Assembly (NCBI RefSeq): GCF_902652985.1 | Contig: NC_047022.1 | Span: 45,198,001-45,262,000, forward strand | DNA length: 64,000 nt | From: Pecten maximus | Lineage: Eukaryota | Direction: 5' to 3' | In this document: piece by piece, positions 1 through 36,649 of the stretch | Layout of the letters: each line of letters starts with the position of its first letter | How positions within the stretch are numbered: the first letter of the stretch is position 1 | The notes under the pieces: model-generated | What the model was told of the DNA's origin: nothing | The model's input: only the letters and a program-made list of their open reading frames with translations | The model's database searches: none | Program-made: the position numbers and the translations under genes

Positions 1-3000
1 GAAAGGCTTCATTTAACAGCTCTTCCGACCAAGTACGAGCTTTAAGAATATGTATTATGAGCTTCGTCTGAACATGATATTCAACATGCCATCGAAGGAC
101 ATCTTTTAGACTTGAATCATTGAACAATGCTCCCATAGTGTTCAAGTAGACAATGAACATCAGGTCTGCAAATGACTAAAGCCTGATGTAAGGCTTCCAC
201 TGAGTTGGTCAACTGACCATGCCTTAGATCTTCTCACAAACTGTACAACTTTTTGCGTGTCAGGAGCCCTTTTGACAGCCGCTATCAAAGCATCGTTTCT
301 GAATTTCCCTCCTTTTTCTTAGAAACTGGATGGTTTTCGAAAGACCCGGATTTTAATGCAGCACTCATCGCATCAGTGATCTGCCTCCGAGACCATTTGG
401 TTTTCAAAAAAACATATGCAAGCATTTAGGGACACGTTTGTTGAAGTCTATAAAGACTGCTGGGTTTTCGAGGGACTGTAACAATTCATCCAGAAAATCA
501 ATATCTATCGTAGAATCTGTGTCTGGACTTATTACTTTTTGATCATCCAGCCGTTTGGACACGTTCACCAAAGCTTCTTCTTTAAATTGTGCTCCACCTT
601 TGAAAAGGGTTTCCATGGTAGCACGAGATCCGCACATCACGGCTGCGTCAAGGACATCATGAAGCTGCACAGCGGTCCAAGGTTTGGTTGTCATTATTGC
701 TTCAACAACATTCTCCACTCCAGTGAGATTTGTTCCAGCCTTCCTGACAAAATCATCAATAGACGGTTGACCACCCGCCTTGGTGAGAACTTCTATATGA
801 TCTGTTTTATTTAGATGAATGGCTTCAGAGAGCATGGAGTTCAACTGAGCTGTATCGGTATTGGATGAGAAAAGGACGAAACGGAACATATCCAAGTTAC
901 AACTATGTAACGCATGTTGGACAACTCTCCCTTCAATATTTCCAAGAATCATTTTAATTGCAATGACGTCCGTTAAAATTTTGTGTTTTGATTCCAGAAT
1001 TATTTTCATCAGATAATGACAATGTTCTTTTAATTGTGGGGACTGAAAAATCGCATGAAGTATGGCAAAGTCCATTTCTTTGGCAGCTCTCGTCATATCT
1101 TCCATACACATGGTTAGGAGTTCTTTGGCGTTCGTGTTGATGTACGTTTTCTGTTTGATACACTGATCCCTTATCAACTGTACCTCGCATTTTGTTCTAC
1201 TCCTCTTAAGGGTGTCACGAATGTGATCTGGGGTATTGTCGCTGATGTATTTCTTTACTTCAGATTCTGCCCAAACATTCTTTGACAATACAAACTTGAC
1301 CAGCTTTTCATCGTTTGAACCGATTGCTAACTGAAGACATTTTTCAGTGAGGAACGCCCCTTTATTAAGAAGAATTGACATGGGTTCCAAACGTACATGT
1401 TCCAGGGCTCGTTGTAAAGCTCTCTGTAATGCTCTTGTGTAGGTCAAAATACCGTGTTCCTTGACAGTTAATTCGTCGAGTTTGAACTTGAAAAATGCTC
1501 TTAAGAAGAACACATTGTTTGCACAAGATTCTAGCAGACTGTTTGTGGTAGAATATGTACTCCCAGAATGAGCTTTTAAGAAACCCCTTTTATCGCTTTG
1601 TTTGGTGATATACTCGAAGAGACAATCCCCAAGCTTTTGATTACGGAACCGTGGAAAAGATTCCAATGTAATTCTATCGTAAATGTCCCCTTCCATGATC
1701 ATTTTGTACATTCGCTTTACAAGATGTCCAAAGCACTCAGCAGGCACATGCAAGGTGCATATGTCGTTTTGACCATCTTCCGTGACGTCCAGCAGTTCCA
1801 ATATCACGCGGTTGCTACATTTTTCTAAAATCATTTTTGGATTTTCCTTTCCAAACACCAGGCTAACACTATCTGCTATTGATTGATGACCAAAGGTGAA
1901 CACTGTGTTTCGTTTCGTTAGATATGTACGATCCAAGGCGTCAAGACTGTCTTTTAGTATGGTTAGTACGTTGTCGGTGTGAGGAACGCCACATACTTCT
2001 GCATAGACCTTCAAAGAGTCATAATCTTCTGGTGGCATTTTTAAACGGTTCAGCATTTTAGTATCTATAGTTTGGTCGTTTAAGAAGCAATATACTAGTG
2101 CAAAGTATTTGTGTGGTTCGGTGAGTCTCATTTTCTGTATCTCCTCTGTAAGCATGCGGTCAGGATTTCTGAAAAACTGCCCCCCTTTCGCCAAAAAAGT
2201 ATCATTATTGAAAAAGAGCTTACAAATTTGAGGAAAACCTATAGAAATATTTGATGGAAAACTAAAAGCCGCCAAAAATGAAAACAATGGGCTAAACGAC
2301 TTGTTGTTACCAAGTTGTCTTTGATTTGAATAGTTATTGAACATTTTTGTACGTTCTTTCATGGTCAATCTCTGGTCATCAGTCAAATCTACCGTTTTCT
2401 TTTCGGACAGAATGTGGTCACTTACCATCTCTATCAGTACACCCGACTCTCGTCTGGCATCTTTAAGTATATGTGTGCGAGAAGTCACTACCAAACAAAC
2501 TTTTCCCTCATGTAAACTTTGTAAAATTCTATCGAAGAATGGTTTCCACCCATTCAAAAGTCCTGTCTGATAGTTTGTTTTCCCAAAGATGTCATCTACA
2601 AACACAACGATATCACCTTTGTCATTCACAACATCACTCCAATCCTGGGGCACTGTTATGAGAACAGGTGTCTTTTGTTTGATATCATTGTCAAGGGTAC
2701 CGTCTCTCAGCTTTCTACATATTTCCCTACCCAGAGTTGTCTTCCCCTCTCCGGTGACCCCGGATATGATCACCATGTTATAGTCCTTGAGACGCTTGAC
2801 TACTTCTTCCTCAGCTTTGGTCCTGGTGACAAGTAAGTTGTCAGTTTCTTCGATGTGACGTTTTAACATTCCTTCCATATTACCTGAAAGCAGAAGATTT
2901 TGTACGTATAGCTACCTGCTGTCTCCAAAAATGTTTACGTTTTACCAACATGTTTCATGGATAGAATAATAATAAACATTGAAAACGTGTATACATCATG

Positions 3001-6000
3001 TTGTAAACAAACTCTTGACAACAACATCCTTCAGTTGCGATGCAAGCAAAATCAGGAACGCTTTCGCAGTGTTAAACTGTTAAACGCATAACTTCAAATA
3101 ATGTCCAATTTGTATAGGGTGTCTTGACCAGGGGATCATTGAGCGAGAGTGAGAATGTTAACTTTGCTGACCACGTCACATGTTGTGCTCTAATTGTCCA
3201 CACTTTCAGACTATCTAAAACCCATATTGTACTAATCTCAATAGATCCGAGTCTATCATATCTGCACAATCGACAAATGCTACACATCAATGAAAGTAAA
3301 CGTGTTAACAAGGAAAATTACAGTGATTATAACAAAGAAGTTTCTAGACGAGAAATGATCAACAACACAACTGTTAAATGTCTATATATGCCCCAGTAAT
3401 ATAGAGAGGAATCTGAAAAAAAACCCTCTGAGTCACGGCAATATGGGAAAAGTACAGGGACAATAACAAAGAAGTTTCTAGACGAGAAATGATCAACATA
3501 TACGAAGATGTTGAATGTCTATATATGCCACAGTAATATAGCAAGGAATCTGAAAATCCTGAGTCACCGGAATATGAGAGTACATCCACTGGAGAAACCA
3601 TGCGTTTTAACATCAATGTTTACCTTTTGTGCAGTCCTTTGGTACATCACATACACAATAGGGAGACAAATGCCAAAAGGACCTGGTATCCCCATGCCTG
3701 AGAGAATTATCGGAAAAATTCATTGGGTACTCGACGAAGCTCAGCGTATCAACCCCAATATAACTCAAACAATCTAGATATCAACTAAAAAAACCACAAC
3801 AAAGTGGTTGACGAAGACGATTTCAACTGTCGTTTTGTATAGTCGTCGTAAAATAAGGGAATGGACAGTAATAACAGCTACACGAACAGTGAAATGCCGT
3901 TTCATAAACTTGGTGATGACAGTGATATATTTGGGTAAGTTTACCTTCAAGCAAAAGTCTTTTGGGACTTTTGGTTACAACTTCTTCCTCCTTTTTCTTC
4001 TTTGTTTTCGGAATTTCGCTGTCGTTATTGGCAAGTACTACAACATAAAAAAATCTTTTTAGTCATCGCAGTATCCTTAATTCGTGCTAACATGAACATT
4101 TACTACTTTATCGGAGCTGTCATATTTCCAATTAGGAAATCACTTCATCTATTTCATCCATATGAAAGCATTACCTTATTATTTAAGGAAGATTCTTTCA
4201 CTCAGATCCTGTAATTCTTTCCTATGAAACATTTGCTGTTTAGGGAATTTCTTAAGATAGATAACGTCGATGAAACCTGAACCTAAGCATCAACTAGCAA
4301 ATTTGAAACCGACGAGGTACTGAATATTATCTCAATTGTTATCGATGCCCAAATGTCACGGTGATTTACTATTATTAAAGTTCCACTAACACATGTAATG
4401 TGTATAGATACTTGCACTGTGTATCGTGTGTAATGTTATTACAAGCCCCTATGTGAAATAATGTCATATGTACCTGTGTATATAGTTGTTATTGTGATGT
4501 ATGAGAGGTGAGCGCAAGGATTGGTTGAGAGAGTCACTTTTACCCCGCATGGCCCTATACCCGTGCACGTGGCAAACCTTACCTGGGCCCTGCACAGGTG
4601 AGTACAGCCCACAACGACTATAACTCCAGCACGAACCTACACGTATAGCACAAGCATGTGTGCTTTTAGGCCACAGTGATTCAAGGTAAGTTATTTCATG
4701 AAAAATTATATTTAAAAAAATATTAAGTTTATTTGAACTATTGACTATAGATCAATTATATCTAGTTGATATATTTGCATTCTGAATATCTTGCCGTTGT
4801 GTTAAACTTTATAACACTGCACATACCCGAGGTCCAGTTTCATGCGTTTAAAGTTAGCATAAACGTACTTTGTATAATGAATATTATATGTGCAATGCAA
4901 GAATTTGGGAGGGCTGTTTTTTCAACTACTATATATATTCCGTTTACTATATCTTAATCAATTTGTTCTATATTTTGTGATTGTATTTGTCTTCCTTGTG
5001 TGTTTTAGGTCATGGTAGCCGAGTGCTTTAGGTGTCCCGACAATTTATCACTAGCCCTCCACCTCTGGGTTGCGAGTTAGAAACCAACGTATATTATATA
5101 GTCACTACCGAACAAACTTTATTATCAAAGTGTAAATGTAATATGTATTACCTTGGGATAACTTTCTTGTGTTCTTTTTCTTAGTTGTCTGTGTCTTCTT
5201 TCTCTTCTTCGGTTTTGGAACATCGCAATCGTCCTTCTTACCTGTCGGTCACAAACCAAAAACGATTTATTTTATCTTTTGTTACTGTGAGTCACTCTTT
5301 CATCCGGATTGGTTGTAAACAACCGGAAGTTTTAATACCTTATCAACTTTTTATCAAAGGTTTAACAGAAATAATGGAGTTATTTAAAAGTGAACTTTTA
5401 CAATGGAATATAGAATACCAGTCAACTGGTTCCTTTAACAATAAATTGTTTGTGGTAGAAAATATCTTCGCGCTATATTATCATTGTTATCAATATTAGA
5501 ATAATATCATTTGATAGATATTGTTAACAATTGTTAATTAGATAGATTTTACAAGTTTGTATCATATCGTATTATACCTCAAGTTTGGTAAATATTCTAC
5601 AAACCTTCATTGATGATAGTCAGATTTCCCGTACATACATTGTCAGCTTGTTTCACTTTCATAGTCCCAACATTGGTCTCTTCTTTATATTTTCTTTTGT
5701 CAATATAATTGACGACCACTGGAATATATGTTCGATACATAATATAGAGCCTGAACCACTGCATATTACATTATAATATGAATACACAACTGAACTGATA
5801 TCACTCGCAGGGTGATAAGATACATGTAAATTTAAACAAGTAAGGTTAGATATTTAATTCACGACGAATTTGCACACCACCAAAATCGATTATGATTTAT
5901 CTAAGAAATTTTAGAACATTTTTCCAAAGAAAATATTTCGACATCTTACATTGATTAACAGTATTTGGGTTGGAAACTGTTCCAGATGAAGGTCCAGGTA

Positions 6001-8676
6001 TTGCTACTGCGCCTGCGCTCTCGCTTGTAGTACTACTTCCTGGGTGATTAGGATTACTAACAGGCAGAAGAGATTCCAAAACCTGACTGATCCTGTCGGC
6101 ACTGGCTGGGTTAACATTGCTGTAGCCTGCAAGGTAATACTTTATCTATAGAATTTCATTTTTATGCAATCAATGAACGTGACAACTTCCTATCCATACT
6201 GCTGATCGGGCTCAACTTTAGCAGGCACTTTATAGTGTTTGTTTTAAAAGCTCCCAAAATAACACCAGGGTTTTGCTCTCGCATAGGTTCCTGATTAAAT
6301 GGCATAACACTACCAGTAAAAATATAACAGAGACTTGTTTGTAATCAAAGTCGATAAACGGAGGTCAAAAGTTGAATGGCGAAGGGTTGGACTACTTTCG
6401 AAAAACAGGAGTACCGCAGGGTAGAACAATATACGCCCATCGAATAATGTATAGTGTTAGGTATTATCTTGCATTCCCCCCTCTACATAGGGAAGGGTAA
6501 CTACACCAATTTCACCCTTTATATAGGGTAGCTACCTCAGGTCACCCCTCTATATAGGGTAGCTACCTCAGGTCACTCCTCTATATAGGGTAGCTACCTC
6601 AGGTCACTCCTCTATATAGGGTAGCTACCTAAGGTCACCCCTCTATATAGGGTAGCTACCTCAGGTCACCCCTCTATATAGGGTAGCTACACCAGGTCAT
6701 CCCTCTATATACGGTAGCTACCTCAGGTCACCCCTCTATATAGGGTAGCTACCTCATGTTACCCCTCTATATAGGGTAGCTTCACCAGGTCACCCCTCTA
6801 TAAAGGGTAGCTTCACCAGATCACCCCTCTATATAGGGTAGCTACCTCAGGTCACTCCTCTATATAGGGTAGCTACCTCAGGTCACCCCTCTATATAGGG
6901 TCGCTACCTCAGGTCATCCCTCTATATAGGGTAGCTTCACCAGGTCACCCCTCTATATAGGGTAGCTACACCAGGTCACCCCTCTATATAGGGTAGCTAC
7001 CTCATGTTACCCCTCTATGTGGTAGCTACCTCAGGTCACCCCTTTATATAAGGTAGCTACCTCAGGTCACCCCTCTATATAGGGTCGCTACCTCAGGTCA
7101 CCCATCTATATATGGTAGCTACCTCCGGTCACCCCTCTATATATGTTAGCTACCTCAGGTCACCCCTCTATATAGGGTAGCTACATCAGGTCACCTCTCT
7201 ATATAGGTAGCTACCTCAGGTCACCCCTCTATATATGGTAGCTACCTCAGGCCTTCCCTCTATATAGGGTAGCTACACCAGGTCACCCCTCTATATAGGG
7301 TAGCTATCTCAGGTCACCCCTCTATATAGGATAGCTACCTCAGGTCACCCCTCTATATAGGTAGCTACACCAGGTCACCCCACTATATAGGGTAGCTACA
7401 CCAGGTCACCCCTCTATATAGGGTAGCTACCTCAGGTCACCCCTCTATATAGGATAGCTACCTCATGTTACCCCTCTATATAGAGTAGCTACCTCAGGTC
7501 ACCCCTCTATATAGGGTAGCTACCTCAGGTCACCCCTCTATATAGGGTAGCTACACCAGGTCACCCCTCTATATAGGGTAGCTACACCAGATCATCCCTC
7601 AATATAGGGAAGCTACACCAGATCATCCCTCAATATAGAGAAGCTAACTCAGGCCGTCCCTCTATATAAGGTGATTAAAATTCTATGCTGATACATTGAA
7701 TGTTCAGTGCGGTAGGCGGAAGGGATCGACCTAGGAATGGACGTACGGACATGTTTGACTTGTAAGGTGCATCGCAGTGCACAGAGAGGTTTGATAATGA
7801 AAACAAGTACATCTGCGTGATTATGGACGAACAGACAGACACGGAAGGAATTACGGTAAAACACCATAGATATATCATACACATTAGCGTTAGTTGTTCT
7901 TACCAAGTCTAACATTGACGCCAGTATTTTCTTCAGTAGGTTCAGCTGTGTTAGCCTGTAACGAAAGGACTGGTCCATATCAGAATAAACTTTTTATCAC
8001 AGTATGTTTACACAAGGGACGGTTACTATGACAAAATGTCTGATTTTCTTATATAAATACAAAACAAAAAACAAAACAAAAACATGTTATTGTTAAAATG
8101 AAATTTGTTTTACTATGTAATAAAAATAGAAATATAGTTTTATAAAGAGGGACATGCTATGATTATCATTAATTGTGTTTGTATATATCTTTCTCATTGA
8201 GTAAAATTCCACATTACTGCTTTTTGTAAGTTCTTGAATTAGCAGTTGTATATCGCAATAAAAATGAAAAGTACTATCTAATAGTGTCTCATTAGCCATA
8301 TACGGCTGCGTGTTGGTTATTTTAAAGTTTTAATGAAACTATATGTATTTTATACTTACAATGTAATGTATCAATACGTGCCACTTGATTAAACATATCT
8401 GAATCTTTATAAGAAGAAGTTTTCGATGTGTTACTTGAATAAACCTACCTGTTTATCGCTCTTTCCCGGTCCTGGGTTCGGCTCTATTCCTTGTATACGC
8501 AGGAGGAGATCAATGAATGTAACAGCCCCTTTGATGTCCAGTTTGTCGTGTGTGAGGTCACCCCGGACACTGGCGATCGCTTTACAGAGGTATTCGATGT
8601 TTGACAGGGCATCCTTCACTGTCCGAGGCACAAACTGACCAACCCGTGCACGGTACACCGCCAAATCCACGCCCAT
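1..8676 (-). CDS. STAND NTPase (nSTAND3-like)/ankyrin-like repeat protein, paralogue 1, with 2A-like N-terminal leader; 3' end runs off the window; apparent frameshifts in the first ~430 bp
   Basis: Seven coding exons with GT-AG ends and consistent phases: 8676-8449 (ATG in GCGGCCATGG), 7955-7904, 6126-5950, 5718-5605, 5241-5152, 4037-3945, 2883-<1. Walker A GVTGEGKTT and Walker B IVVFVDDIFG lie in ORF 404..2878. Relative to paralogue 2 there is a 1-nt deletion near 425 and further 1-2 nt indels between ~155 and ~340. Confidence 0.8.
404..2883 (-). CDS. Large NTPase/repeat exon of paralogue 1 (open portion)
   Basis: 824-aa ORF, colinear with and highly similar to ORF 16991..20890. Acceptor tttcag at 2884-2889. 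Confidence 0.85.
5013..5085 (+). mobile_element. tRNA-derived SINE head fragment
   Basis: A-box-like TAGCCGAGTG and B-box-like GTTAGAAACC at tRNA-like spacing; no complete cloverleaf. Confidence 0.5.
6517..7670. repeat. 30-bp minisatellite (CACCCCTCTATATAGGGTAGCTACCTCAGGT-like) in intron 2 of paralogue 1
   Basis: Direct tandem repetition. Unit contains the palindrome CTATATAG. Confidence 0.95.
8449..8676 (-). CDS. First coding exon of paralogue 1: 76 aa, ending in the 2A-like motif GIEPNPGP
   Basis: MGVDLAVYRARVGQF...FIDLLLRIQGIEPNPGPGKSDKQ, followed by donor GTAGGT. 71/76 aa identical to 25845-26072. Confidence 0.8.
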
Positions 8677-10510
8677 GGCCGCCTTAGACACAAATGTATT
8701 GGTCATTTACTATAACTTGATAAAATATGTTTTGATAGTTGAACATTTCTGTTGTTCCTGGATACCTGTACCATTGGAATTATTTCTATTATCTAAACGT
8801 TATCATATCATGTTCTGTCTTGATAGCTATAGTCAGGCATTTATCGTTTAGTTAAGCCTGTTTGTGATCTTAGCTTATCGACTAGTCTGGGCTCCTCGTG
8901 GTTCGGAAAAGAGAATTCTGTCATGGCGGCCTGACATTTGTGCAGGATACATCTTAAGGCTTTAGGCATGGGTTGTCTCACTCTGTAAGTAATTGTTGTT
9001 TGCTAAAACCATCTTTAGGATATTAATAACATTAATCTAGTCACAATTTGTTGCATAATTATGTTTACGTGTGTTTTCCCAATGCTGGCCACACATGTTT
9101 ACGTTAGACGGTACGATAGTTTATAAGTTAGTTTTGTTTATTGTAGGCCATATATGTGTCAGTTTTATAGCTAGACATGATTCTGTATATAGTTGATGCT
9201 CGTGCTAATCTGTATTTACGGTGAAGTTAGTATCAATTCATTGTAAGTCTATAATAATGATAGTTTGAGGTTCGTTAAGCACACAATGCTAGACAATTTG
9301 CCGAACACATGGTTCTATAAATAGCCATAGCTAGCTATATGCTACAGTGCATAAGTCGAGGTTTGTTGATATTTTGAACATTTCTATCCTGGATAAATGC
9401 ATGTGTAATACATGAAGAGTAACTAGTCATAACGACACTATAGGAATGTCTATTTAGTCTAGTCAATTTGATATTACTGGTATGTTATAAGGTTTATGGA
9501 TTAAAGCTATAGTTAGTGTTTATTGTTGTTGCAGGTTTCACCTACACTACAGTCTACATAGCTTGCATAGCTACACAGCTACACAGCTACATTATGTTCG
9601 TAACTACTTTGTACATATATATGAAACCTTTGGAGGTCTGTACCAGATCATTGGAATAAAGTTTGGACATTGGTGACACGTTCTGTGACTTTTTTATTAG
9701 GCATATGGCAGAACATATCATCAGGTTTTCACCACATTATTACAAAATAAAACAGAACGCTTTCAGCCTCAATATAGGGAACATCTTCGGGCATTGTAAT
9801 GGAACCTTTTGTTTCACTGATGTTTTTTTTTTAAAAACATTGATAATATAACCATTTTGGGCCCAACCTCCTTGAACAACTAGAAATAGAAATATTGATG
9901 GTTCTGTTTTTAAGGTAGATATGTGTGAGACATAGTCTAGTCACTTTTACTCAGAATATATTCCAAAACGTGACATACTTGCAACACATGTTATTTTCTG
10001 GTTTTTAAAATGTAGGGTTCTCTACATTATAACAGAGAGTCTACCTAAATCGATCTTGGGAAAATGACTTTTTGGCCTTCTATAAGATAAAGAAAATAAG
10101 ACAATATCACGTTTTTAGCCTTCTCTTAGGTACAACATCTAGCTTTTGTTTGATGATTGATAAAAGAATCTGTCTAGGAAGACATACTAAAATACAATTG
10201 TCAATTTATTCAACTGGGTTATTGGATTGTAAAAAAATCAGGCAAGCACGCACGTGTTATGTTTGTCATATATTTGTGATATACCATCTGTAACGTTTAA
10301 CTAAGAAAGGACTAGAAAATACTCAAAACTATTCGATTGCTTAATCCAAGATATATTATTATAACCTTCACTCCGATTTCTTATAAAGACGACATTATTG
10401 TGGTAATTTAAGCCAGCATATTCAGCAAGCAGATAATATATATACATGTATATCTATTTTTGTTGTTCAAATGATGAACCTTTTTAACGATATGATCAAT
10501 ATAATATATA

Positions 10511-12040
10511 CTGAAACGAAAAAGAAACGCAACATGGAAAATTGTGATTAATTTTGTATTAAATATACATATCTGTATAAAAATCGCGGAAATAAACATG
10601 CACCCTGCCTAACACCCATACCAATCTTCAAAATCACCCAAGTGTGACTAGAGACCTATGCACTTCCGGCGCGGTAAAAACATCAAAAACCGTGCCTGTA
10701 CAAACATATGCGTTCTTTTTTCATTCAAACCAGTATCAATTCATCACTAACATTGAGCCACATCATCGCCAATACTTTTGCAAACAATAATTCCTTTTAC
10801 AATTATGCCACGGTTATCAAAGGTTGATAGAGGACGTGCTATAGCGATGCTTCTGGCAGGGAACACGCAACTTCACGTCGCTCGACAATTCAGAGTTCAC
10901 AAATCGACTATTAGTCGATTAGTTTCACGTCTTAACGCAACAGGAAGAGTCGATGACCAGCCGAGATCAGGACGTCCACGCGTAACGTCGCGACGTCAAG
11001 ACCGGGTTCTTAGGTTGGCACACCTGCGTAACAGGAGATTAACGGCCGCTGAAACGGCAAGGAATACGATTGGTTATCATAACCGTCGAATTCATCCCCA
11101 AACAGTGATCAACAGACTGCTTGAGGCTAATTTGCGTGCAAGGCGACAGTACGTTGGTTTACCACTAACACCGCAACGTCGAGCACGTCGTATGCAATGG
11201 GCAACGGCACATATGCCCAGACGTTTTCCTATGAGACGTTGGAGGTCTATGCTCTTCACCGATGAATCTCGATTCACGTTATTTCGAGCAGATGGCCGTC
11301 AACGTGTGTACCGGCGTCGAGGCGAACGTTTTGCTGACGCCTGTGTTTTGGAACACGACCGATTTGGGGGTGGATCAGTTATGGTTTGGGCGGGAATCTC
11401 CCATGGTTTGAAGACGCCTTTGGTGATAGTCAATGGGAATTTAACGGCCGTACGCTATCGGGATGAGATCCTTAGGCCCAATGTTGTGCCGTTTGTTAGG
11501 CAGCATCATCTAACCTTTCAGCAAGATAACGCGAGACCACACGAGTCTGTAGAGACTTTCTTGCGACACAGAACATTGTTCCTATAGATTGGCCTCCATA
11601 TAGCCCCGACCTGTCCCCAATCGAGCATTTGTGGGATGAATTAGACAGAAGAATTCGAAATCGCCGTAACCCCCCCAAATACCCTCCCTCAGTTAGCAAA
11701 TGCACTCGTCCAAGAATGGAATAACATTCCAATACGGAAAGTCAATGCCCTGATGAACTCAATGCAACAAAGAATTAGAGATGTGATAACTGTTCGAGGA
11801 GGACACACACGATATTAGGTCACGGTTTCAAAACTGCTGCCATTTCAACTTGGATTCACGTAGGGTACTACCAATCATGACCTTCTAGCAAAGTGACCTG
11901 TTCTTAAAAATCTCTAAACATTTAAAGGATGTTACATCAATATTCAATATTAACTATTACATATGAAATTTAAACATAATGCTCATAAGTATTATTTTAT
12001 TAAACCTACAATTTGAAGTTGCGTTTCTTTTTCGTTTCAG
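10511..12040 (+). mobile_element. Tc1-family (DD34E) DNA transposon, full length, transposase disrupted
   Basis: Perfect 23-bp TIRs CTGAAACGAAAAAGAAACGCAAC / GTTGCGTTTCTTTTTCGTTTCAG flanked by TA on both sides. Confidence 0.92.
10805..11818 (+). pseudogene. Tc1 transposase with two frameshifts
   Basis: Paired-like HTH, GRPR, FTDESRF, GGGSVMVW and QQDNARPH, then a frameshift at ~11541. WPPYSPDLSPIEHLW continues in another frame; an extra C at ~11671-11676; ends GGHTRY-TAG. Confidence 0.9.
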
Positions 12041-16990: not shown

Positions 16991-19900
16991 CTATGTAATA
17001 AACCTTTGGATGTATGCCTCGAGTTTAGACTCTGACAGTAGTTTAGCCTTTTCCCTGGCATCTATAAGTAGATCCTGTGACAGAGACCCGGGACTTGTGA
17101 TCAGGAGTCTGATGATAGACAGGCGATGTGACGGTTTACATTTCTTCTCCAGTAGTTCCAACAAACATCGTCCTGACACCACCCCTCCGCACCTGAGAAT
17201 GCATCTAATCACCCTTATATCTCCCAATTTTACAGCACTCAACAAGGCTTCATTCTTCTCATCCGCATCCCACCCTCTTGCGTTCAATACAAACTGCACG
17301 GCAGGAAGTCTATCTGACAGTTTCCAGTTTTTGTGAATGACTCTTCGCAGGCTTTTTTCTGCAAACTCGGCCCCTTGTTCACAAAACAGTGTCAGTAGTT
17401 GAACACATCCGATTTCTAATGACTTTTGCAGTGCATTGTTCATCTGTTGTGTATCGTATTGACGACTTTTTATTAAGTACGTCACTAGAGCGTAAATATC
17501 ATATCCTTCAGTTTTATCAGTGATTGCGTATTCCAGACTTTGGTCACTGAACATTGCCCCGTGACCATATAGGTAGAATACCACCTCAGTATACCCGAGT
17601 CTCAAAGCTTTGTCAAGTGCCTTCATCAGCAACTCATCAGACCAGTGTCTGGATTCCCGTACTAGGCGGACCATTTTCAGCCTATCGTATCTTTGGTAGT
17701 TCCGAGTGTTTTCCATGGCATTTGATAAACTGTCGTCGTCGCAGGGAATGTGCATCTCGCTTAGCAATTTTTCAACGATTTCTGTGCAACCTTCTTGAAT
17801 TTCCTTATTTAGGAGAACAGCTAGGTCCTCATTTTTGCCTTCATCTTTTAAAGTTTGAACAACATTTCCCTTCAGCTGATCTATACCTCGTAGCATTAGA
17901 ACACATCCTAATTCTGATTCCTCAACTGTGGTAAGAAACGCAAGGACTGCGAGACTTCCTCTTTCACATGCAAAATGAAAGGCTTCATTTAACAGCTCTT
18001 GTGACCAAGTACGAACTGTAAGAATATATTTTATGAATTTCAACTGAATATGATGTTCAAGATGCCACCGAAGAACATTTTTCAGACTTGAATCATTGAA
18101 CAGTGCTCCCATAGTGTTCAAGTAGACAATGACATCAGGTCTGCAAATGACTAAAGCCTGATGTAAGGCTTCACTGAGTTGGTCAACTGACCATGCCTTA
18201 GATCTTCTCACAAACTGTACAACTTTTTGCGTGTCAGGAGCCCTTTTGACAGCCGCTATCAAAGCATCGTTTCTGAATTTCCCTCCTTTTTCTTTAAGAA
18301 ACTGGATGGTTTCGAAAGACCCGGATTTTAATGCAGCACTCATCGCATCAGTGATCTGCCTCCGAGACCATTTGTGTTTCAAAAAAACATATGCAAGCAT
18401 TTTAGGGACACGTTTGTTGAAGTCTATAAAGACTGCTGGGTTTTCGAGGGACTGTAACAATTTATTTAGCCAATGAATCCGTTCTTCAGGAGTCATTGTG
18501 TCGCTACTCTTTGTTAGTGGATCATCCAGCCGTTTGGACACGTTCACTAGAGCTTCTTCTGTAAACTGTGCTCCACCTTCGTAAAGGGTTTCCATGGTAG
18601 CAGATGATCCGCAGGTGACGGCTGCGTCAAGGGCATCATTTAGTTGTGCGGGTGTCCAAAGTCCTGTTTTCATAATCACTTCTACGACGCTTTCCACACC
18701 CCTTAAATTTGTTCCAGCCTTCCTGACAAAATCATCAATAGACGGTTGACCACCCGCCTTGGTGAGAACTTCTATATGGTCTGTTTTATTTAGATAGATG
18801 GCTTCAGAGAGCATGGAGTTCAGCTGAGCTGTATTGGTTGAGAAAAGGACGAAACGGAACATATCCAAGTCACAACAATGTAACGCATGTTGGACAACTC
18901 TCCCTTCAATATTTCCAAGAATCATTTTAATTGCAATGGCATCAGTTAGCATTTTGTGTTTTGATTCCAGAATTATCTTTATCAGACTATGGATATGTTC
19001 TTTTAATTGTGGGGACTGAAAAATTGCATGAAGTATGCCAAAGTCCATTTGTTCGGCAGCTCTCGTCATATCTTTCATACACATGCTTGGGAGTTCTGTG
19101 GCTTTCTTGTTGATGTACGTTTTCTGTTTGGTACACTGATCCCTTATCAACTTTACCTTGCATTTTGTTCTTCTCCTCTTCAGGGTGTCACGAATGTGAT
19201 CTGGAGTATTGTCGCTGATGTGTTTCTTTACTTCAGATTCTGTCCAAACATTCTTTGACAATACAAACTTGACCAGTTTTTCATCGTTTGAACCGATTGC
19301 TAACTGAAGACATTTTTCAGTGAGGAACGCCCCTTTATTAAGAAGAATTGACATGGATTCCAAACGTACATGTTCCAGGGCTTGTTGTAGAGCTCTCTGT
19401 AATGCTCTTGTGTAGGATAGAATATCGTACTCTTCGACAATAAAATCGTCGATTTGGAACTTGAAAAATGCTCTTAAGAAGGACACATTGTTTGCGCAAG
19501 ATTCTAGTAGACTGTTTGAGGCAGAATATATACTCCCAGAATGAGCTTTTAAGAAACCCCTTTTATCGTTCTGTTTGGTGATATACTCGAAGAGACAATC
19601 CGCAAGCTTTTGGTTACGGAACCGTGGAAAAGATTCCAATGTAATTCTATCGAAAATGTCCCCTTCCATGATCATTTTGTACATTCGCTTCACGAGTTGT
19701 CCAAAGCACTCAGCAGGCACATGCAAGGTGCATATGTCGTTTTGACCATCATCCGTGACATCCAGCAGTTCCAGTATCACGCGGTTGCTACATTTTTCTA
19801 AAATCATTTCTGGATTTTCCTTTCCAAACACCAAACTAACACTATCTGCTATTGATTGATGGCTAATGGTAAACAACGTGTTTTGCTTTGTCAGATATGT

Positions 19901-20856
19901 ACGATCTAGGGCGTCAAGGCCATGTTTAAGACTGGTTAGTACGTTGTCGGTGTGAAGAACGCCACACACTTCTGCATAGACCTTCAAAGTGTCATACTCT
20001 TCTGATGGCATTTTTAAACGATTCAGCTTTTTAGTATCTATAGTTTGGTCGTTTAAGAAGCAATATACCAGTGCAAAGTATTTGTGTGGTTCTGTGAGTC
20101 TCATCTGTTCTATTTCTTCTGTAAGCAACCGGTCAGGATTTCTGAAAAACTCTTCTCCTTTCTCGAAAAACGAATCATTAGCAAAGAAAAGCTTACAAAC
20201 CTGGGCATAGCCTATAGCAATATTTGATGGAAAACTCTTAATTGCAAAACTTTCAAGTAACATGCTACCAAAGCGGTCATTCTCCCTCTGTCTTAGATTA
20301 GAATGATTTTTGTAAATATTAACACGTTCTTCCTTGGTCAATCTGTGATCATCTGTCAAATCTACCGTTTTCTTTTCGGACAGAATGTGGTCACTTACCA
20401 TCTCTATCAGTACACCTGACTCTCGTCTGGCATCTTTAAGTATATGTGTGCGAGAAGTCACTACCAAACAAACTTTTCCCTCGCGTAAACTTTGTAATGT
20501 TCTATCGAAGAATGGTTTCCACCCATTCAAAAGTCCTGTTTGATAGTTTGTTTTCCCAAAGATGTCATCTACAAACACAACGATATCATCTTTGTCATTG
20601 ACAACATCACTCCAATCCTGGGGCACTGTTATGAGAACAGGTGTCTTTTGTTTGATATCATTGTCAAGGGTACCGTCTCTCAGCTTTCTACATATTTCCC
20701 TACCCAGAGTTGTCTTCCCCTCTCCAGTGACCCCGGATATGATCACCATGTTATAGTCCTTGAGACGCTTCACTACTTCATTCTCAGCTTTGGTCCTGGT
20801 GACCAAAATATTGGTCATTTCTTCGATGTGCCGTGTTAACATTGTCTCTGCATTCT
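16991..20856 (-). CDS. Terminal NTPase + repeat exon of paralogue 2
   Basis: 1299-aa ORF with Walker A GVTGEGKTT, Walker B VFVDDIFG, LVVTSR sensor, and C-terminal W..QL..AL..A...G repeats. Confidence 0.9.
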
Positions 20857-23800
20857 CTGGATAAATGAACACAAAAGAGCTCCGTTTCATTATTTAAGTT
20901 ATGTAAAGTAAATATAAATATAGAGAATATTTCGTGAGTCTCCTTTGACTGATGATATGTAAAATACAAATATATCTTGAAGGAGTTATAATATGTTAAA
21001 TATCGATGTAAGGTGTCATAATACTAAGTAGTATCAACAACAACCAGAATGCGTGTTTAATACATTGTTAAATTGATAATAACAGTATATGTAATTGATG
21101 TTACCTTCAAGTAAAATTCTTTTAGGATTTTTCTCCTTTGTTTCAGGTTGGTGATCGTCTTCATTTCCACCAGATGCTTCTGAAAATAAATACAGAGTAT
21201 AACGTTTGCCTTCTCGCTCAGTGTAAAGATAAATCTAATTTGTACAGGTGTTACATCTGTATTATAGTCTCACTTCGAATGAAAGGTTATTCGCAGTACA
21301 TTAAATTTGTCTCAGGAGCAACTCAATTCATCACCCCTTGGAATCGACCAACGTAACATTCAATCCTTATTTCAAATAGCCGCTAATACACATTTCCCCT
21401 GATAAATTGAACTTGAACTTGTGCAAGTCTAATATAAATAGTCCATCATTAGGATGCTCATCAAACAGTATTATTAAGACAAAATACGATAATGTAACGC
21501 ATTTACCATAAAGCAACAGAAAACATAGCATGATGTAATAAAAATAATAATTTTATCTTTATAACCAAAACGCTACGCAAGCTGCGCGGATGAATAATGA
21601 CTAGACTGTGTTCTGCGGTTGTCTCCTGCTTCGATTCGAACTGAATTCTAACTAATTCTAACCAGCTGTGCTAAAAAAATATGCCTGGCGTTCGATTGGA
21701 TAACTTTCTTTCTGGATATGACATCATAAATCAAGTTTCATATTCCATGAGCATCTCGTATTCAATCATGTGATCTATTAATGAATTATAAAACTGACAT
21801 AAACCATTCCTATTTATACCAACCTGTGTGTACAATCGTCTGTTCCCCTGTACATACATTTTCAGCATGTTCCATGTTCATCGTCTCAACCTTGATCTCT
21901 TCTCTGTATTTTCTTTTGTCAACATAATTGACAGTCACTGAAATATTTGTTCATCAAAATAAAAACGCATTGGCAAGCCTATGTTCTTATATATATGATA
22001 ATGTTACAGTGTTTATGGAGATGATGGAGATTTATTCAATAAATACATAAATAAGCAAGTAGAGTAAAGACAAATATTACTTATATACAGTTAAAGCGAC
22101 ACATTTTATAGAAAAAACAACACGGAAAGTTATAAGGTAAACTACTGCTATTCATAGCCGCCATAATAAAATAAAATAAAATCCATCCACTCCCTATATG
22201 AAAAAAGTAAATGGCGCCAAAAAAAGTGAAGTCAAAATACGACCATCGACGCTGCGTTTGGAGTTCCTTAAAAGAATCCAATATAAAGCAAGTAAAATTG
22301 GACATAAAAAGCGTTTTGTATTTGAAATACAGGTTCAGAAATTAACTTTAAGCATGATGTCAGTATTAATTCAGTTTCATACCCCTATATTAACATATAT
22401 CCCTTCTTGAGCATAGAAACCTGATTGCGAATGAATAAGCGTTTACCCAGTGAAAAAAAGACTCAGTGGATTAATAAGCGCGGAAATCGTTAACGTAACC
22501 ATGACATCGTCTCTTTGTGACGTTACGAAGCATCAACTAGACGGCGCCATTTTGAAAGGACTCGTCAACACAATTTTAGCGTTTTCTCCTGTTACCCGAC
22601 GTTCTCTGTATAAAAGCTGACGTCAAATGATTTTTTGCCTAAATTGAATTTGTGGAAATAGGTGCATATTTCACTTCTCCACAAGGTAAGATAACAACAA
22701 ATGGCTAAAGCGTGCATTCGACCACATCAGTATTAAATTTGTGTCAATATACGCTGTGTTGACAACCATAGTTAATAAGAGACAGAAATTGTAAATTGAG
22801 AATAGAATCTATATCAATTAATTTTAAACTTAAAAATAATATTATGTTAGCAACCTGCATGGTATTTCAACGATTTGTTTGATATCAATATATAGATCAC
22901 TATGCATTGAACGGTACATCGTTCAATCCCTATATGAAACTGAAAACATATTGACATCCATGCATAAATATAAACTGCTTACAGAGAACTGTATGTTAGC
23001 TGTTAAAAGATAATTAGAACCATTTCATCTTCAATATTAATCTACTTAAAACCTTACATTGATTTATAGTTGTTGGGATGGCAACTCCAGCAGAAACTCC
23101 GGTTATTGCTACTGCGCCTGCGTTCTCGCTTGTAGTACTACTTCCTGGCTGATTAGGACTACTAACAGGCACAAGAGATTCCATAAACTGACTGATCCGG
23201 TCAGCACTGACTGGGTTAGTATTGCTGTCTGCGAGGTAATAAACATATAATAAGAGTTAAGTCAGCTAGATGTTTACTTTGTATGTGATCACGTGTCTTT
23301 TTATTATTGTTTAAGGTTACGAATGCACTGATGAATTAAACCGGTGTGGTCCTTGTAGAGCAAGGGTACGTAATTTCGCACAGTGCGTAAATTCGCACAC
23401 CTGACGATTTTTTGCGTTTTTCCTCCAAGTGGTCGAGGACTGTGTTTTTTTGTTTAAATGATGACTAATGTCAACATTTAGTAAAACATTTGCCATTTAA
23501 AGTACTTTTTTCAGATTAAGTTCGTTTTGAAAACAAATTTTAACTGATACAACTCTCTTCCGATAAAATTGATACCGGATGATTAAATATTTTATCTAAA
23601 ATAATCCCAGTTGTTGATTGGCATGTGAATTTGCAAATATTTAAGGAAAAATATAATTTGATCAGATTATAAAAAAAACTTAATACAAATCCACCAAGTA
23701 TAACTAATAACAGCGCTGACCTGCTGACACTCCGTCATTTTCCCCGCCTTGTTTACATTACCTCTGTAGGGAGCGGTCATTATTTAAAGCAAACATGGCG

Positions 23801-26072
23801 GTAAATTGACACTTTCCAATTTTACATTATTTTGTTTTTAAAGATTTTTTTAATCATGGCATTGGGCTTAATCTTAGTTTAGGATGTTGTTTGTCTACAA
23901 AATGGTTAAAAACTATTTTTACTAACAAATATTTAAGAAGTTAGATGGGTGTGCGAAATTACGTTCCCGATCGACTTCAAACCCAGCAATAAACACAAGT
24001 TAACAACAGCTCCCATGCGCAGTGATACGTGTGCGCATATTCAGGATGCACACTTGTATGTTACGAAGCATTTGTACATCTAACAATGTGAGGTATTCTT
24101 TCTTGATTTGAAATTGATTTGATTGAAATGTATTTAAAAACATACCGAAAGTGTGCGAAATTACATATCCCCACTCTAGAGTTACAAATCAGCCTATTTC
24201 TAATTTCTGTTTATCTGTATTTCAAAAACTGACGTGGTCGTCATAAGGTTTCACAGTACAGAATGGAGTAATGTATGCTATATGAATTAAACCGGTGTGG
24301 TCCGTGTTACAAATCAGTTCAAATTTCATTTGCCGTGCACTTTTGCACTTCTAAACTGGCAATGTCAAACAATGGCATTTTAAGGAGTGAAATATTGAAA
24401 AAATACGTATTCATATCATATTTAAATCATATTTACATCATATTTATATCACACAATGTATTTCTACCACAATACGCTGTGTTTTTCCACTCTCAAGCAA
24501 TTGTATAAATGTGCCAACCTTTCGGTCTTTTGATTGGTCAATAATTCGAACTTTGACCCGAGCTGCAATTGTTATTGATTTTGAATTGTCATCAATAATC
24601 GTATCGAATCTGTACACCATATTTGCATACGCGAAATAAGACTTGACCACGTTTCCCTTTGATTCAAGCTGATATAATTGTGGTAGAAACAGGTCACACG
24701 ACTCGTGATTATTGGATATGAAATTTATTTCACACTCGTAAGTTATTATTTTTTTAAATTACAAAAGACACTCGCTAAAGTTCGTGTCTTTTGTAACTTT
24801 AAAAAAAAGTTACTCGTGTGAAATAAATTCCATATCCAACAACCACACGTTGTTCGTTGTGTAACCTCTATTTTTATTACATTTTTACCAGTGAAATATC
24901 AAAAATTATTCATTCTATAAAAGTGATATTTTTCACTAGTGAAGAATATCATATTTTTCACTAGTGAAAAATATCACTTTTGCTGATTTGACCAATCAAA
25001 TTAATGATTTGAAAATACCAAAATAATTGACCAATCAGAAAGCCTGACATATATGTCAGCACCTGGACAGGGGAAACTACTTTTTTTGCTGCGCACTCGT
25101 GAAAAATATCAAAATATTAGCCCCACTCGTGAAATATATTTGGTATTACTGAAGACACTGTTAGATATCCTCTATATATCATATTTATATCATATTTACA
25201 TCATATTTACATCATATTTATATCATGTTTATATCATACTTATATTTTATTTATATCATGTTTATATCATATTTATATCATATTTATATCATATTTATAT
25301 CATATTTACATCATATTTATATCATGTTTATATCATACTTATATTTTATTTATATCATATTTATATCATACTTATATTTTATTTAAATCATATTTACCAA
25401 ATGTGTTGTTGATGTCATTGTTGTCTTCAGCCTGTTCCTCTGTAAACAACTGTAACCACATGCTTTCATAAATGTCAAAAAAGTTTAATATAGTGTCAAA
25501 ATAATACTTAACCAATTAAAACGCTGGTACGATATTGTTACAGACCTTCCGGACTGAAATTCGTTTAAAATGAGTGACACCCATTGTCTCTGTGATTGAT
25601 CTATACACCTAGCCGAACTTCTCTATCGAATTAATTATAAATAATGGCATTAAAGTTTCCCATATTTAAAGCTTATACTGTGTAATATATAAAGATGTAT
25701 TTATATCCACCAAATGTAACATACCCCCATTATACTGCCAGAGAGTGGGGTTTACAATATTTTATTATTTAATGGGTTTTTTTTTACATGTAGGAAAGCG
25801 ATATTATAAAAGACATTCTAATGGTGTTACTAAAATAAACCTACCTGTTGATCTGGCTTTCCCGGTCCTGGGTTCGGCTCTATTCCTTGTATACGCAGGA
25901 GGAGATCAATGAATGTAACAGCTCCTTTGATGTCCAGTTTGTCGTGTGTGAGGTCACCCCGGACACTGGCGATCGCTTTACACAGGTATCCGGTGTTTGA
26001 CAAGGCATTCTTCACTGTCCGAGGTACAAACTGACCAACCCGTGCACGGTACACCGCCAAATCCACGCCCAT
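16991..26072 (-). CDS. STAND NTPase (nSTAND3-like)/ankyrin-like repeat protein, paralogue 2, intact, ~1501 aa, with 2A-like N-terminal leader
   Basis: Six coding exons: 26072-25845, 25449-25398, 23228-23058, 21937-21824, 21179-21105, 20856-16991. Lengths 228+52+171+114+75+3866 = 4506 nt, open frame, all GT-AG. Exon lengths 228, 52 and 114 are the same in paralogue 1. Confidence 0.85.
23358..24176. mobile_element. Non-autonomous TIR element (MITE-like) in intron 2 of paralogue 2
   Basis: Imperfect TIRs GAGCAAGGGTACGTAATTTCGCAC / GTGCGAAATTACATATCCCCACTC flanked by TA, with internal GTGTGCGAAATTACG subrepeats. Confidence 0.6.
25170..25395. repeat. AT-rich 11-bp tandem repeat (TATTTATATCA)
   Basis: Directly visible. 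Confidence 0.85.
25845..26072 (-). CDS. First coding exon of paralogue 2 with 2A-like motif
   Basis: ...FIDLLLRIQGIEPNPGPGKPDQQ, then donor GTAGGT; strong Kozak context GCCATGG. Confidence 0.8.
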
Positions 26073-26676
26073 GGCCGCCTTAGACACAAATGCGTTGAAC
26101 ATTATTAATTTCATTCACATATATATAAAAAAAATTGATTTAAAAAAAACATGTATCCACCTGCAGCATTGTGACAGAGACATATATATATAGACATATA
26201 TGTCTCTGATTGTGATATTTAACACCTAATGAAATTTGAAATAAATTCTGAATATTTTCTCACTCTCTTTCGACTTTGAATGCACGATAAACTTTGAAAT
26301 ATACTTCTTACCAACGCTTCCAACCTAGAAATATCAACCCAAGGTCATTTCTAAATAACCTTTGATATTTACTTCACGGCACTTTCACACACAATATTAG
26401 CACCATATCACTATTACGTACGCCTAATAATCTGTAACGGCCTAACAGAAACACCCTGCATCCTACCACTTCTTCATGGAAGTCATAACTTATCACAAAC
26501 GAAAATTGTTATAACGGTAGCGGCGTATCCGCTTGAACCAACATATTACTTCTTATGAGGTCACGGGGTACAGAATTCGCTATAAATGTATTAATATAGC
26601 ATAAATCTACTTTCAGATCTAAAGATTTCATTTGTTACTCAACAAACACACGCTGAACATTTACAGTTAAACTTAC

Positions 26677-27341: not shown

Positions 27342-27756
27342 AAACTGTATATAATTAGGAAACAGTATATAATTAGGAAACTGTATATAATTAGGAAACT
27401 GTATATGATTAGGAAACTGTATATGATTAGGAAACTGTATATGATTAGGAAACAGTATACAATTAGGAAACTGTATATGATTAGGAAACAGTATATAATT
27501 AGGAATCAGTATATAATTAGGAAACTGTATAAAATTAGGAAACAGTATATAATTAGGAAACAGTATATAATTAGGAAACTGTATATAATTAGGAAACTGT
27601 ATATAATTAGGAAACAGTATATAATTAGGAAACTGTATATGATTAGGAAACAGTATATAATTAGGAAACTGTATATAATTAGAAAACAGTATATAATTAG
27701 GAAACTGTATATAATTAGGAAACTGTATATAATTAGGAAACTGTATATAATTAGGA
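27342..27756. repeat. 18-bp minisatellite (TTAGGAAACTGTATATAA)
   Basis: Tandem array; source of spurious ORF 27405..27785. Confidence 0.95.
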
Positions 27757-28099
27757 CGTTAAGACGTCGGACAAATGATCATTGACACCCACGTATTAAT
27801 GGTATTCAGTTTGTGAGTAAGCGTGACCGAATCGACTATTTTTAAAACACCTCGGAATACATAAGACAAAAGTGATTTTGAAAAAGCTCGCTCATCAGTA
27901 AACATGCTTCTTGATCTTATATAGTTATATCATCGTTTAACCTATTACTCGTTTTAGCATGACGCTTTGTTAATTGATACAAAGTATTGTACATTGTTTA
28001 TTTTTGTGATGAATTTGGCTTATATCTTTAAGGATGCACCAAATCCCATTTCAATGTTATGCATACAAATATAAATATTTTTTAATCAATCACATTTTT

Positions 28100-30969: not shown

Positions 30970-32336
30970 ATGAATGCCTTGTGTACTTGTATTGCCACGA
31001 TCCTACTGGCTGTCCTCGTTAACGCAGGTACGTCACTTCACTCGTCCTCACGACACTCAGAGGATCAAGTATTCCGCTCAATGATTATAGTTCAGAAAGA
31101 AATATGATACTTTCAGGCCATTCTTTATCTAAATACTGAAATAATGAGGGTACAACTACAACAGGAAATTCAAATCTTTATCTTCGGATCACCAAGCCAT
31201 AGTGCATATATAACAAAGTAACAGATTTGTCGATGGAAGACACATATAAATGCATTGGAATATGATTTTGTTTCCAAATGAATTGATATTATTTTAACAG
31301 GTTACCCTTACCTATGATGTACAATGACATGTTCCCTATAGTTTTCCTCTCCATTCATAGTTAATTAAACGTTTGTTATCTAATGATTATGCTGTAAAGT
31401 TTACTGATGAAATCCTAACGTTGCAGGAGTATTCGGCGAGAACCTAAGTAATAAGGCACTTTTTAACTCCCGCTTGGGACGATATTGACAGTACAATCCC
31501 TGACAAAGCACGTGTTCTCTCCAGGATTACACGGGCTTACTCCTGTTGGTCTTTTATCAGAGGGTCATTCTTTAGTTCATAGTTTACCATTGTTTCACCA
31601 ATTTTGAATTTGATTCTCTCATCTTTCTGTGTTACAGGTGGGATGGGAGGTGGCCACGGAGGGGGCCACGGAGGGGGCCATGGTGATGGAGGCTGGGGTT
31701 ATCCCAGTATAATGAACGGTTACTCCGGTAGATGGGGTGATTACGGTAGGAGAGGCTACCAAGGAAACATGGGAGACTATTACTATCGTGGTGGTATGGG
31801 GGGACATGGCGGTTCGGGTGGCAATTATCCTATGTACGGTGGAATGGGTGGGATTGGAGGTGGATACGGTAGTAATTATCCTATATACGGTGGAATGGGT
31901 AGTGGATACGGTGGAATTGGAGGTGGATACGGTAGCAATTATCCTATGGGTGGTGGATACGGTGGGATGGGAGGTGGATACGGTAGTAATTATCCTATGT
32001 ACGGTGGAATGGGTGGTGGATACGGTGGGATGGGAGGTGGATACGGTAGTAATTATCCTATGTACGGTGGAATTGGTGGTGGATACGGTGGGATGGGAGG
32101 TGGATACGGTTGGATGAATGGAGGATATGGTGGAATGGGTATTGGACAGAGTGGAATTAGCGGCGGAAATGGTGGAATTGGTGGCTGGCGCGGTGGAATT
32201 GGTGGCGGGCACGGTGGAATTGGCGGTTGGCGCAGTGGAATTGGCGGCGGCCACGGTGGAATTGGCGGTATCAGTGGAATCCGAAGTATAGGGGGAATAC
32301 GACGCCACTCTGGAATGGGAGGACGTAAGGGCGGAC
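30970..32336 (+). CDS. Secreted Gly/Tyr/Met-rich structural protein (shell-matrix/periostracum/byssus-like); terminal exon unresolved
   Basis: Exon 30970-31027 encodes signal peptide MNALCTCIATILLAVLVNA (phase 1). Exon from 31638 encodes GGGYGSNYPMY repeats, GGIGGW repeats and a basic GRKGGR end. Donor GTAAGT at 32337. Confidence 0.8.
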
Positions 32337-32376
32337 GTAAGTTATTATCAATATCAGTGCATGACAGCTATGTTCT

Positions 32377-35966: not shown

Positions 35967-36649
35967 AAAAGGAAAATAAAGTGACACATGGCGATTTCGT
36001 TTTGTTATATATCTTCTGTCAAGAAAGTGGCAAAAAGATCGGGTATAACTAACTTAAATGTTTCTTCCTAACAAACAATAAAATGAATACAATGGACCTT
36101 GACAATACCATATGATGATATTTAAAAATCCATATCCACATTCAAGTTTCGTGGATAACTGAACAAATACGACTGCTCTATAGATAGCAAAATTGTCTCA
36201 TTTGAAGAAGAAATGTTAAACAAATTCTGACAACGATTTCTGATATGACATTTATTTGTAGTATTTTGTACTTTGAAATCCAAATGTTGAGGGTATTAAT
36301 GATTGCATGTGTATGTATTGTACGATTCAGAAACAAATACACAGTAAACAATTGCCTATAATGATCCCTAAAGCGGACATTACTGTACAGCGTAGCTTTT
36401 TGTCAGCCACGGAAACATAAATGAGCCTTCTTGGACTGAATTAACGGAGAGGTATACAGTTGTTTTCTACGGCAATGCTGAAAAATTCAGATAAATAAAG
36501 AACAATGCGCAGTATTTATGTGATATTTTGGTGAAAGATAATTATACATAATACTTTTGTATTGAAGACAACTTCTTGATATATTTAATCTAAATCCTTC
36601 CCCGATATTTCATTGCAGGTACTTATTAACCTGGAGATGAAATGGCATA

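Follow-up and report, generated by a model that had tools for sequence, protein, structure and literature searches.

A putative G-type StopGo leader on an nSTAND3 gene of the scallop Pecten maximus is related to a LINE ORF1 leader and recurs on immune-type genes of bivalves

A 64,000-nucleotide stretch of the Pecten maximus genome (NC_047022.1, positions 45,198,001 to 45,262,000; hereafter the window) was analyzed for a short motif, GIEPNPGP, encoded on the minus strand in the first coding exon of a gene for a STAND protein with an nSTAND3 nucleoside triphosphatase (NTPase) domain. The best explanation of the motif is a selectively maintained StopGo (2A) element of the G-type, with glycine at core position p12, proline at p15 and a leucine-rich stretch upstream, which would cause the ribosome to skip a peptide bond. 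We consider it probable, though well short of certain, that the leader is active and gives a 69-residue peptide plus a Pro-initiated nSTAND3 protein. In the proposed mechanism, the nascent FIDLLLRIQGIEPNPG stretch would hold the ribosome, the Gly69-Pro70 bond would not be made, the 69-residue leader peptide would be released, and translation would resume with Pro, giving a disordered Lys-rich linker of ~165 residues followed by the NTPase and its repeats. The two products named in the original prediction, a 69-residue peptide and a protein starting PGK, follow correctly from the residue count.

The core octapeptide GIEPNPG/P (p12–p19) is encoded by 8490–8467 on the minus strand, exactly at the position first reported, where the strand had not been given. 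It forms residues 63–70 counted from an ATG at 8676 (MGVD..., context gcggccATGG), and the bond predicted to be skipped is the one joining Gly69 (codon 8472–8470) to Pro70 (codon 8469–8467). The earlier residue numbering of 54–70 for the helix and core is right with this start codon, which is backed by RNA contigs beginning at 8683. A further ATG upstream at 8706 is intronic, since the RNA-contig matches start at 8683, directly after the AG acceptor at 8685–8684. The open frame at 8431–8706 (minus strand) reads MTNTFVSKAAMGVDLAVYRARVGQFVPRTVKDALSNIEYLCKAIASVRGDLTHDKLDIKGAVTFIDLLLRIQGIEPNPGPGKSDKQ, followed by gtaggt, and contains ...KGAVTFIDLLLRIQGIEPNPGPGKSDKQ, with the donor CAG/gtaggt directly after it. 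Leader exon A thus defined by its acceptor (ag, 8685–8684) and its phase-0 donor (CAG/gt) spans 8449–8683 on the minus strand, with 235 nt comprising 7 nt of 5′ untranslated region and 76 codons. Within it, the start codon (8676–8674) opens a conserved N-terminal block, MGVDLAVYRARVGQFV (8629–8676), and the core is preceded by KGAVTFIDLLLRIQ (8491–8532, residues 49–62), a leucine-rich, predicted helical segment belonging to the conserved block G.V.FI(G/D).LLL. RNA contigs of three studies cover 8467–8490 without any differing letter. The window holds four NPGP-coding patterns where 0.45 would be expected; two belong to the leader exons of the present gene (paralogue 1) and of a second copy (paralogue 2), and the remaining two (48771 and 49035) fall in a stop-codon-rich repeat. 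GIEPNPGP at 8467–8490 is not a chance match. A Pfam search with the leader alone returned no family. An AlphaFold2 (AF2) model of the leader from a 12-row alignment gave three helices, one of them at residues 46–61, with low confidence (pLDDT 59.5, pTM 0.30), and was not used further.

RNA contigs of four studies were placed on 2760–8755, and their minus-strand GT..AG joints define exons A to G. Between leader exon A and the large NTPase exon lie five small in-frame exons, all placed by RNA joints. Exon B (7904–7955, 52 nt, ANTAEPTEENTGVNVRL) has joints 7954/8448 and 6125/7903 and an open frame that passes from phase 0 to phase 1. Exon C (5950–6126, 177 nt) is of low complexity and Ser/Pro/Asn-rich, with an alternative acceptor at 6062 that gives 6062–6126. 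It is followed by exon D (5605–5718, 114 nt), which holds a conserved NVCTGNLTII, by the Lys-rich exon E (5152–5241, 90 nt) with a sequence resembling a nuclear localization signal (NLS), KPKKRKK, and by the Lys/Glu-rich exon F (3945–4037, 93 nt). Exon G (404–2883), whose phase-1 acceptor at 2883 is supported by a joint, encodes the nSTAND3 NTPase (Pfam PF20720, E 1.1e-25) and helical repeats. Each exon was translated separately, and continuity of the frame was worked out from their lengths and phases. Exon A leaves the frame in phase 0, exon B brings it to phase 1, each of exons C to F has a length divisible by three and exon G has a phase-1 acceptor, so the frame runs from the leader into the large exon, with every exon open in the expected frame. 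The leader and the NTPase are accordingly separated by ~165 low-complexity, Lys-rich residues that include KPKKRKK. The nSTAND3 matches scored 90.6 and 90.7 bits against a cut-off of 27.2 and include the P-loop GVTGEGKTT; the repeats after the NTPase score as ankyrin in the intact paralogue 2. The earlier reading of a 2A/StopGo-type motif in the initial coding exon of a gene for a STAND "receptor" is supported, with the motif closing that exon.

It could still be argued that the motif is fortuitous or that exon A is foreign to the NTPase gene, as open frames alone prove little and none of the RNA contigs placed on 2760–8755 is a single paralogue-1-matching contig over the whole leader-to-NTPase region. 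The chain is instead built from overlapping spliced contigs (A-B-C, C-D-E-F and D-E-F-G), and one paralogue-2-like contig covers exons A, C and D before continuing into the large exon. Given these overlapping contigs, the full-length orthologues annotated in three further scallops and the strong purifying selection on the leader, we regard this explanation as extremely improbable.

Two further observations concern this region. The exon D stretch NVCTGNLTIIN is conserved in scallop orthologues, reading FVNTGEQTIIH in homologue P0002 and NVCTGEQTIIH in P0003; were it a short amyloid-type signalling motif, its place before a STAND NTPase would match designs known from fungi and animals. An intron of the gene (4960–5159) holds a repeat of very high copy number, with a summed contig depth of ~200,000 and many loose ends that are tRNA-like (GTGGCCAAGTGGTTAAGG). 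This repeat is probably a tRNA-derived short interspersed nuclear element, and the NPGP-coding matches at 48771 and 49035 sit in a similar repeat.

The genome (918 Mb, 3,983 contigs) was searched for copies of the leader. Four host-gene leaders were found, three in tandem on contig C8, two of which are within the window and one ~9 kb beyond the window start, and one on C3, another chromosome. The leader exon of paralogue 2 (25845–26079, minus strand) carries the same motif at 25863–25886. The C3 copy is 60% identical and reads LLLLAQGVEPNPGP, and a P. maximus RefSeq protein starts with the same leader as this copy. A profile of the four Pecten leaders gave 49 matches among 1.84 billion proteins, and their source names were those of bivalves only (Pecten maximus, Mizuhopecten, Ylistrum, Argopecten, Ruditapes, Mercenaria and Mya). 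These leaders have two conserved blocks, MGVD(I/L)xxYRxRIGxF and GxVxFIGxLLLx(A/S)G(I/V)E(P/S/Q/L)NPGP, with a variable stretch between them. Conservation of NPGP in orthologues had been set beforehand as a critical check on the original prediction, and xG(I/V)ExNPGP is kept in about 45 homologous leaders. Position p12 is G, N or C in all of these and never D, and conservation stops at the final Pro. In three other scallops, full-length models of 1527–1612 residues have the leader joined to nSTAND3. In other bivalves it precedes death-domain, PARP14-type RRM, URGCP GTPase, Ig and SLOG-like proteins. Judged from these protein comparisons, the leader is a movable module that heads at least six unrelated immune-type architectures in bivalves. 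Among the homologues, three sequences from Logan/JGI contigs (P0008, P0026 and P0030) contain three or four internal G(I/V)EPNPGP sites each in a polyprotein-like arrangement, and they look like viral polyproteins in which the G-type core serves as a repeated separator.

Comparison of the C8 and C3 copies supported selection on the peptide. Synonymous sites are saturated between them, whereas nonsynonymous divergence (dN) is 0.08 in QG(I/V)EPNPGP and 0.12 in the N-terminal block, against 0.63 in the middle and 0.82 past the motif. Of the eight core codons, four show synonymous differences, and the sole amino-acid change is I to V. A fixed core amid saturated synonymous sites points to selection on the peptide, and conservation that ends exactly at the Pro, with the lowest dN of the exon in the core, is a pattern in keeping with a function that revolves around the skipped bond. 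Paralogues 1 and 2 share 95.3% identity in exon A, with flanking introns that are unalignable beyond ~20 nt; identity is 90.9% in the large exon and 83–84% in exons C and D.

The leader is common to host genes and to the first open reading frame (ORF1) of a long interspersed nuclear element (LINE) of the same genome. Searching the genome with the family profile brought up an element present in four or more identical copies, the ORF1 of which starts MGVSVTTWRVRIGTF...LLLVTFGCIETNPGP, with the leader core GCIETNPGP and thus C at p12 (L021–L024 and L036; C6:22626000–22635999 and other contigs). Profile alignment (hhalign) of the host leaders with this LINE ORF1 leader and with the ORF1-like protein P0029 gave 96–97% probability over the full leader length. 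The ORF1 had no Transposase_22 match in Pfam; its assignment is based on its position before an ORF2 with APE-type endonuclease and reverse transcriptase (RT) domains (Exo_endo_phos and RVT_1) and on its coiled-coil and RRM-like sequence. The host leader being homologous to the N-terminus of an APE-type LINE ORF1, leaders were probably exchanged between retrotransposons and host genes. The possibility that the scallop locus is itself a LINE copy was ruled out: a splice donor closes the exon, which is spliced to host exons, and APE and RT domains occur only at the separate LINE loci L021/L036. A different and abundant LINE family (L009–L020 and L025–L034, on many contigs) carries the canonical LLLLLSGD(I/V)E(S/C)NPGP ~100 residues into its open reading frame, directly before an endonuclease-like start (FVHLNVQSIKQK).

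The homology to a LINE ORF1 leader also suits another explanation, in which the exon is an inactive relic captured from the 5′ end of ORF1, with an NPGP that no longer recodes, retained because the leader forms a hydrophobic helix, associates with membranes, is lipidated at its N-terminus or has some other such property. In the scallop, the N-terminal MGVDLAV fits the PROSITE myristoylation pattern, a weak lead in this direction; most clam leaders break that pattern with Q or E at the critical position, as in MGVDIQT, which has Q. A relic also accounts poorly for N, P, G and P being invariant in the 12-sequence leader alignment (one clam homologue, P0015, reads NSGP) and for the course of conservation at the core described above. 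We consider an inactive relic quite unlikely.

Non-LTR retrotransposons and sea-urchin NLR genes had been named as parallels, and both are apt (PMC3708506, PMC4981915). With the APE-type non-LTR leaders of Odon et al. 2013 (PMC3708506) the scallop leader is linked by its homology to the N-terminus of a LINE ORF1 in this genome, and as in the ORF1p cases reported in a preprint (10.64898/2026.06.17.732966) the motif stands 40–80 residues from the N-terminus, before a coiled coil. Here, in contrast to the retrotransposon leaders, it is on an ordinary spliced host exon with no APE/RT domains attached. The 2013 survey searched for GD(V/I)ExNPGP and so could not pick up G-type leaders. With the sea-urchin NLR genes (Roulston et al. 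2016, PMC4981915) the scallop gene shares a cellular StopGo-type motif at the N-terminus of expanded innate-immune STAND genes, and in both animals non-LTR retrotransposons of the same genome also have 2A-like leaders. The Strongylocentrotus purpuratus element is a 26-residue hydrophobic signal sequence with a GD(V/I)ExNPGP core on NACHT-LRR proteins, whereas the scallop leader has 69 residues, an additional conserved N-terminal block and a G-type core, and it precedes nSTAND3-ankyrin, with five other architectures in bivalves. Judged from length and sequence, and with no signal-peptide predictor run, the leader is not a signal peptide of the sea-urchin type (~26 residues); it is 69 residues long, and D56 and R60 disrupt its hydrophobic run.

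The sea-urchin precedent (PMC4981915) nevertheless raises dual targeting as an explanation, in which, after failed skipping, the hydrophobic stretch would serve as a signal or anchor and direct the fused protein to the secretory pathway, and successful skipping would leave the product in the cytosol. Clam leaders have an unbroken hydrophobic run (e.g., VLFIGVLLMIAGV), and some of them (P0015, P0019 and P0035) add a hydrophobic segment. In the scallop STAND genes, however, Asp and Arg break up the stretch (FIDLLLRIQ), which is placed some 50 residues into the protein, and what follows the motif contains Lys-rich, NLS-like exons and an NTPase of cytosolic type. Dual targeting is very unlikely for this gene.

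The suggestion that the glycine at p12 weakens the motif is not supported, G(V/I)EPNPGP being one of two StopGo cores that are common in nature. Li et al. 2026 (PMC12846837) counted G at p12 in 1,207 viral octapeptides, compared with 908 exact D matches, noted that functional D12G variants were already confirmed, and widened the core to (D/G/C/N)(V/I)ExNPGP, which GIEPNPGP matches. In the same viral set, p12 = G pairs with p15 = P, and in a recognized class with leucine-rich upstream sequence ("motif 5") the last residues, up to p12, are (A/G/S)G. Moreover, Baral et al. (preprint 10.64898/2026.09.24.754024) described a natural peptide with G at the core D position that gave 97% separation in HEK293T cells. 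A G63D mutant would not be a repair, as D is absent at this position from the homologous leaders, all of which have G, N or C; the change would take the peptide out of its natural class.

Motif 5 (PMC12846837) is the closest viral counterpart, sharing G(I/V)EPNPGP after a leucine-rich stretch that ends in the p12 G. The clam and consensus leaders, LLLxAG(I/V)EPNPGP, fit it exactly. The paralogue 1 leader reads LLLRIQ-G with p15 = P; its leucine run is present, but p11 is Q. Members of motif 5 are internal separators of viral polyproteins, whereas the scallop element is in a spliced host gene. The class B 2A sequences of Rao et al. 2025 (PMC12338488) have an identical G-I-E-P-N-P-G-P; their core is EEGIEP(N/H)PGP with Trp at position 16 in strict register. 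Acidic residues precede the G in class B (EEG), where the scallop has Gln and a leucine-rich upstream sequence as in class A. Membership of class B was rejected, as all four Pecten copies have Ile at position 16 and Phe at 17, with no Trp in register.

Several points weigh against an active leader of this kind. Scallop copies have Q at p11 in place of the A, G or S of motif 5 and of the clam leaders, and motif 5 was not among the motifs assayed in PMC12846837. In P2A and F2A, D12 tolerates no substitution with good activity (Baral et al., preprint 10.64898/2026.09.24.754024), so that G works only in the right context, and 139 of 1,969 non-canonical viral peptides were highly active in HEK293T cells in that study. 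We found no published assay of this peptide or of any family member, and a literature search for 2A leaders on bivalve or mollusc host genes returned nothing specific. The exon A RNA contigs carry variants of paralogue 0 (8606T, 8629T) or of paralogue 2, not those of paralogue 1. Finally, the 3′ half of paralogue 1 is frameshifted relative to paralogue 2, a 1-nt deletion near 427 leading to a premature stop at 404–406. Further indels relative to paralogue 2 occur at 337, 320, 198 and 157, after which the frame is restored. The leader, linker and NTPase parts of paralogue 1 are intact. Paralogue 1 is either a truncated gene or a decaying copy, unless the stretch at about 157–430 is spliced out as an intron. 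In paralogue 2, the large exon with nSTAND3 and ankyrin repeats is intact (16991–20856, minus strand, with the acceptor at 20856 predicted from sequence and phase), and the homologue of exon C lies at 23053–23238; blastn gave no match for exons B and E, both of which are short and of low complexity.

The leucines of the leader bear on a further alternative. Eukaryotic 2A-like peptides with at least three upstream leucines often cut output instead of giving clean separation, and this "reduction" class is tied to at least three leucines at −19 to −10 (preprint 10.64898/2026.06.17.732966); the paralogue 1 leader has three, at −13 to −11. In that work, Snell and Matreyek reported 2A-like peptides on proteins of the death-domain and ankyrin-like groups and on LINE ORF1p/ORF2p, and half or more of those tested from each group were in the "reduction" class. 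The leader could on this account be a translational throttle, in which the leucine-rich helix and NPGP stall the ribosome and lower the yield of a potentially dangerous STAND protein, with poor restart or quality-control removal of the stalled chain leaving little useful second product. Odon et al. (PMC3708506) likewise proposed down-regulation of the downstream product. The "reduction" result, however, comes from one preprint and from human cells, the strict conservation of the N-terminal block (dN 0.12) would be superfluous for a simple stall element, and the putative viral polyproteins P0008, P0026 and P0030 reuse the G(I/V)EPNPGP core as a separator. We judge the throttle unlikely but a serious contender, and favor separation of the leader from a Pro-initiated NTPase protein.

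If skipping occurs, the mature NTPase protein would be annotated as starting at Pro70 and not at Met1. A broader and more speculative reading, which we hold to be distinctly improbable, is that a domesticated LINE ORF1 5′ module placed before nSTAND3, death-domain, PARP14-RRM, URGCP GTPase, Ig and SLOG genes acts as a translation-coupled switch. StopGo efficiency, depending on ribosome and release-factor state, would then set the proportion of free active protein to leader-fused or aborted protein, infection, ribotoxic stress or retrotransposon activity would be read out at the point of immune-protein synthesis, and the 69-residue peptide, once released, could itself be functional.

N-terminal StopGo sequences on immune STAND genes and on LINE proteins are already known. 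The long two-block leader, the G-type core on host genes, its occurrence on at least six bivalve architectures and its homology to LINE ORF1 are undescribed in the searchable literature, although the bivalve peptides may already be present without comment in large published tables. Recent reviews describe StopGo as rare in cellular genes. The sea-urchin NLR family is the best-studied cellular case, and the bivalve set would be a second, separate one. It offers a system for asking what cellular StopGo does (separation, throttling or targeting), whether host genes acquire leaders from retrotransposons and whether the leucine-rich, G-type class works.

Other features of the window were recorded. 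A Tc1/mariner-type transposase fragment with HTH_Tnp_Tc3_2 and related HTH domains lies on the plus strand at 10778–11587, ~2 kb upstream of the paralogue 1 leader exon. An open reading frame of 252 residues at 32403–33161 (minus strand) has a zf-AD (zinc-finger associated) domain just over the Pfam cut-off. On the plus strand, 31604–32455 holds a repetitive Gly/Tyr/Met-rich open reading frame of 283 residues with GGMGGGYGSNYPMYGG units, which may represent either a gene for a structural protein or a minisatellite that resembles coding sequence. Minisatellite arrays were located at 25053–25412, 27405–27785, 36610–36969, 38529–39302, 40070–40405, 44000–45497, 50037–50744, 58443–60422 and 61286–61702, and the long arrays in the right-hand half of the window yield spurious open frames on both strands.

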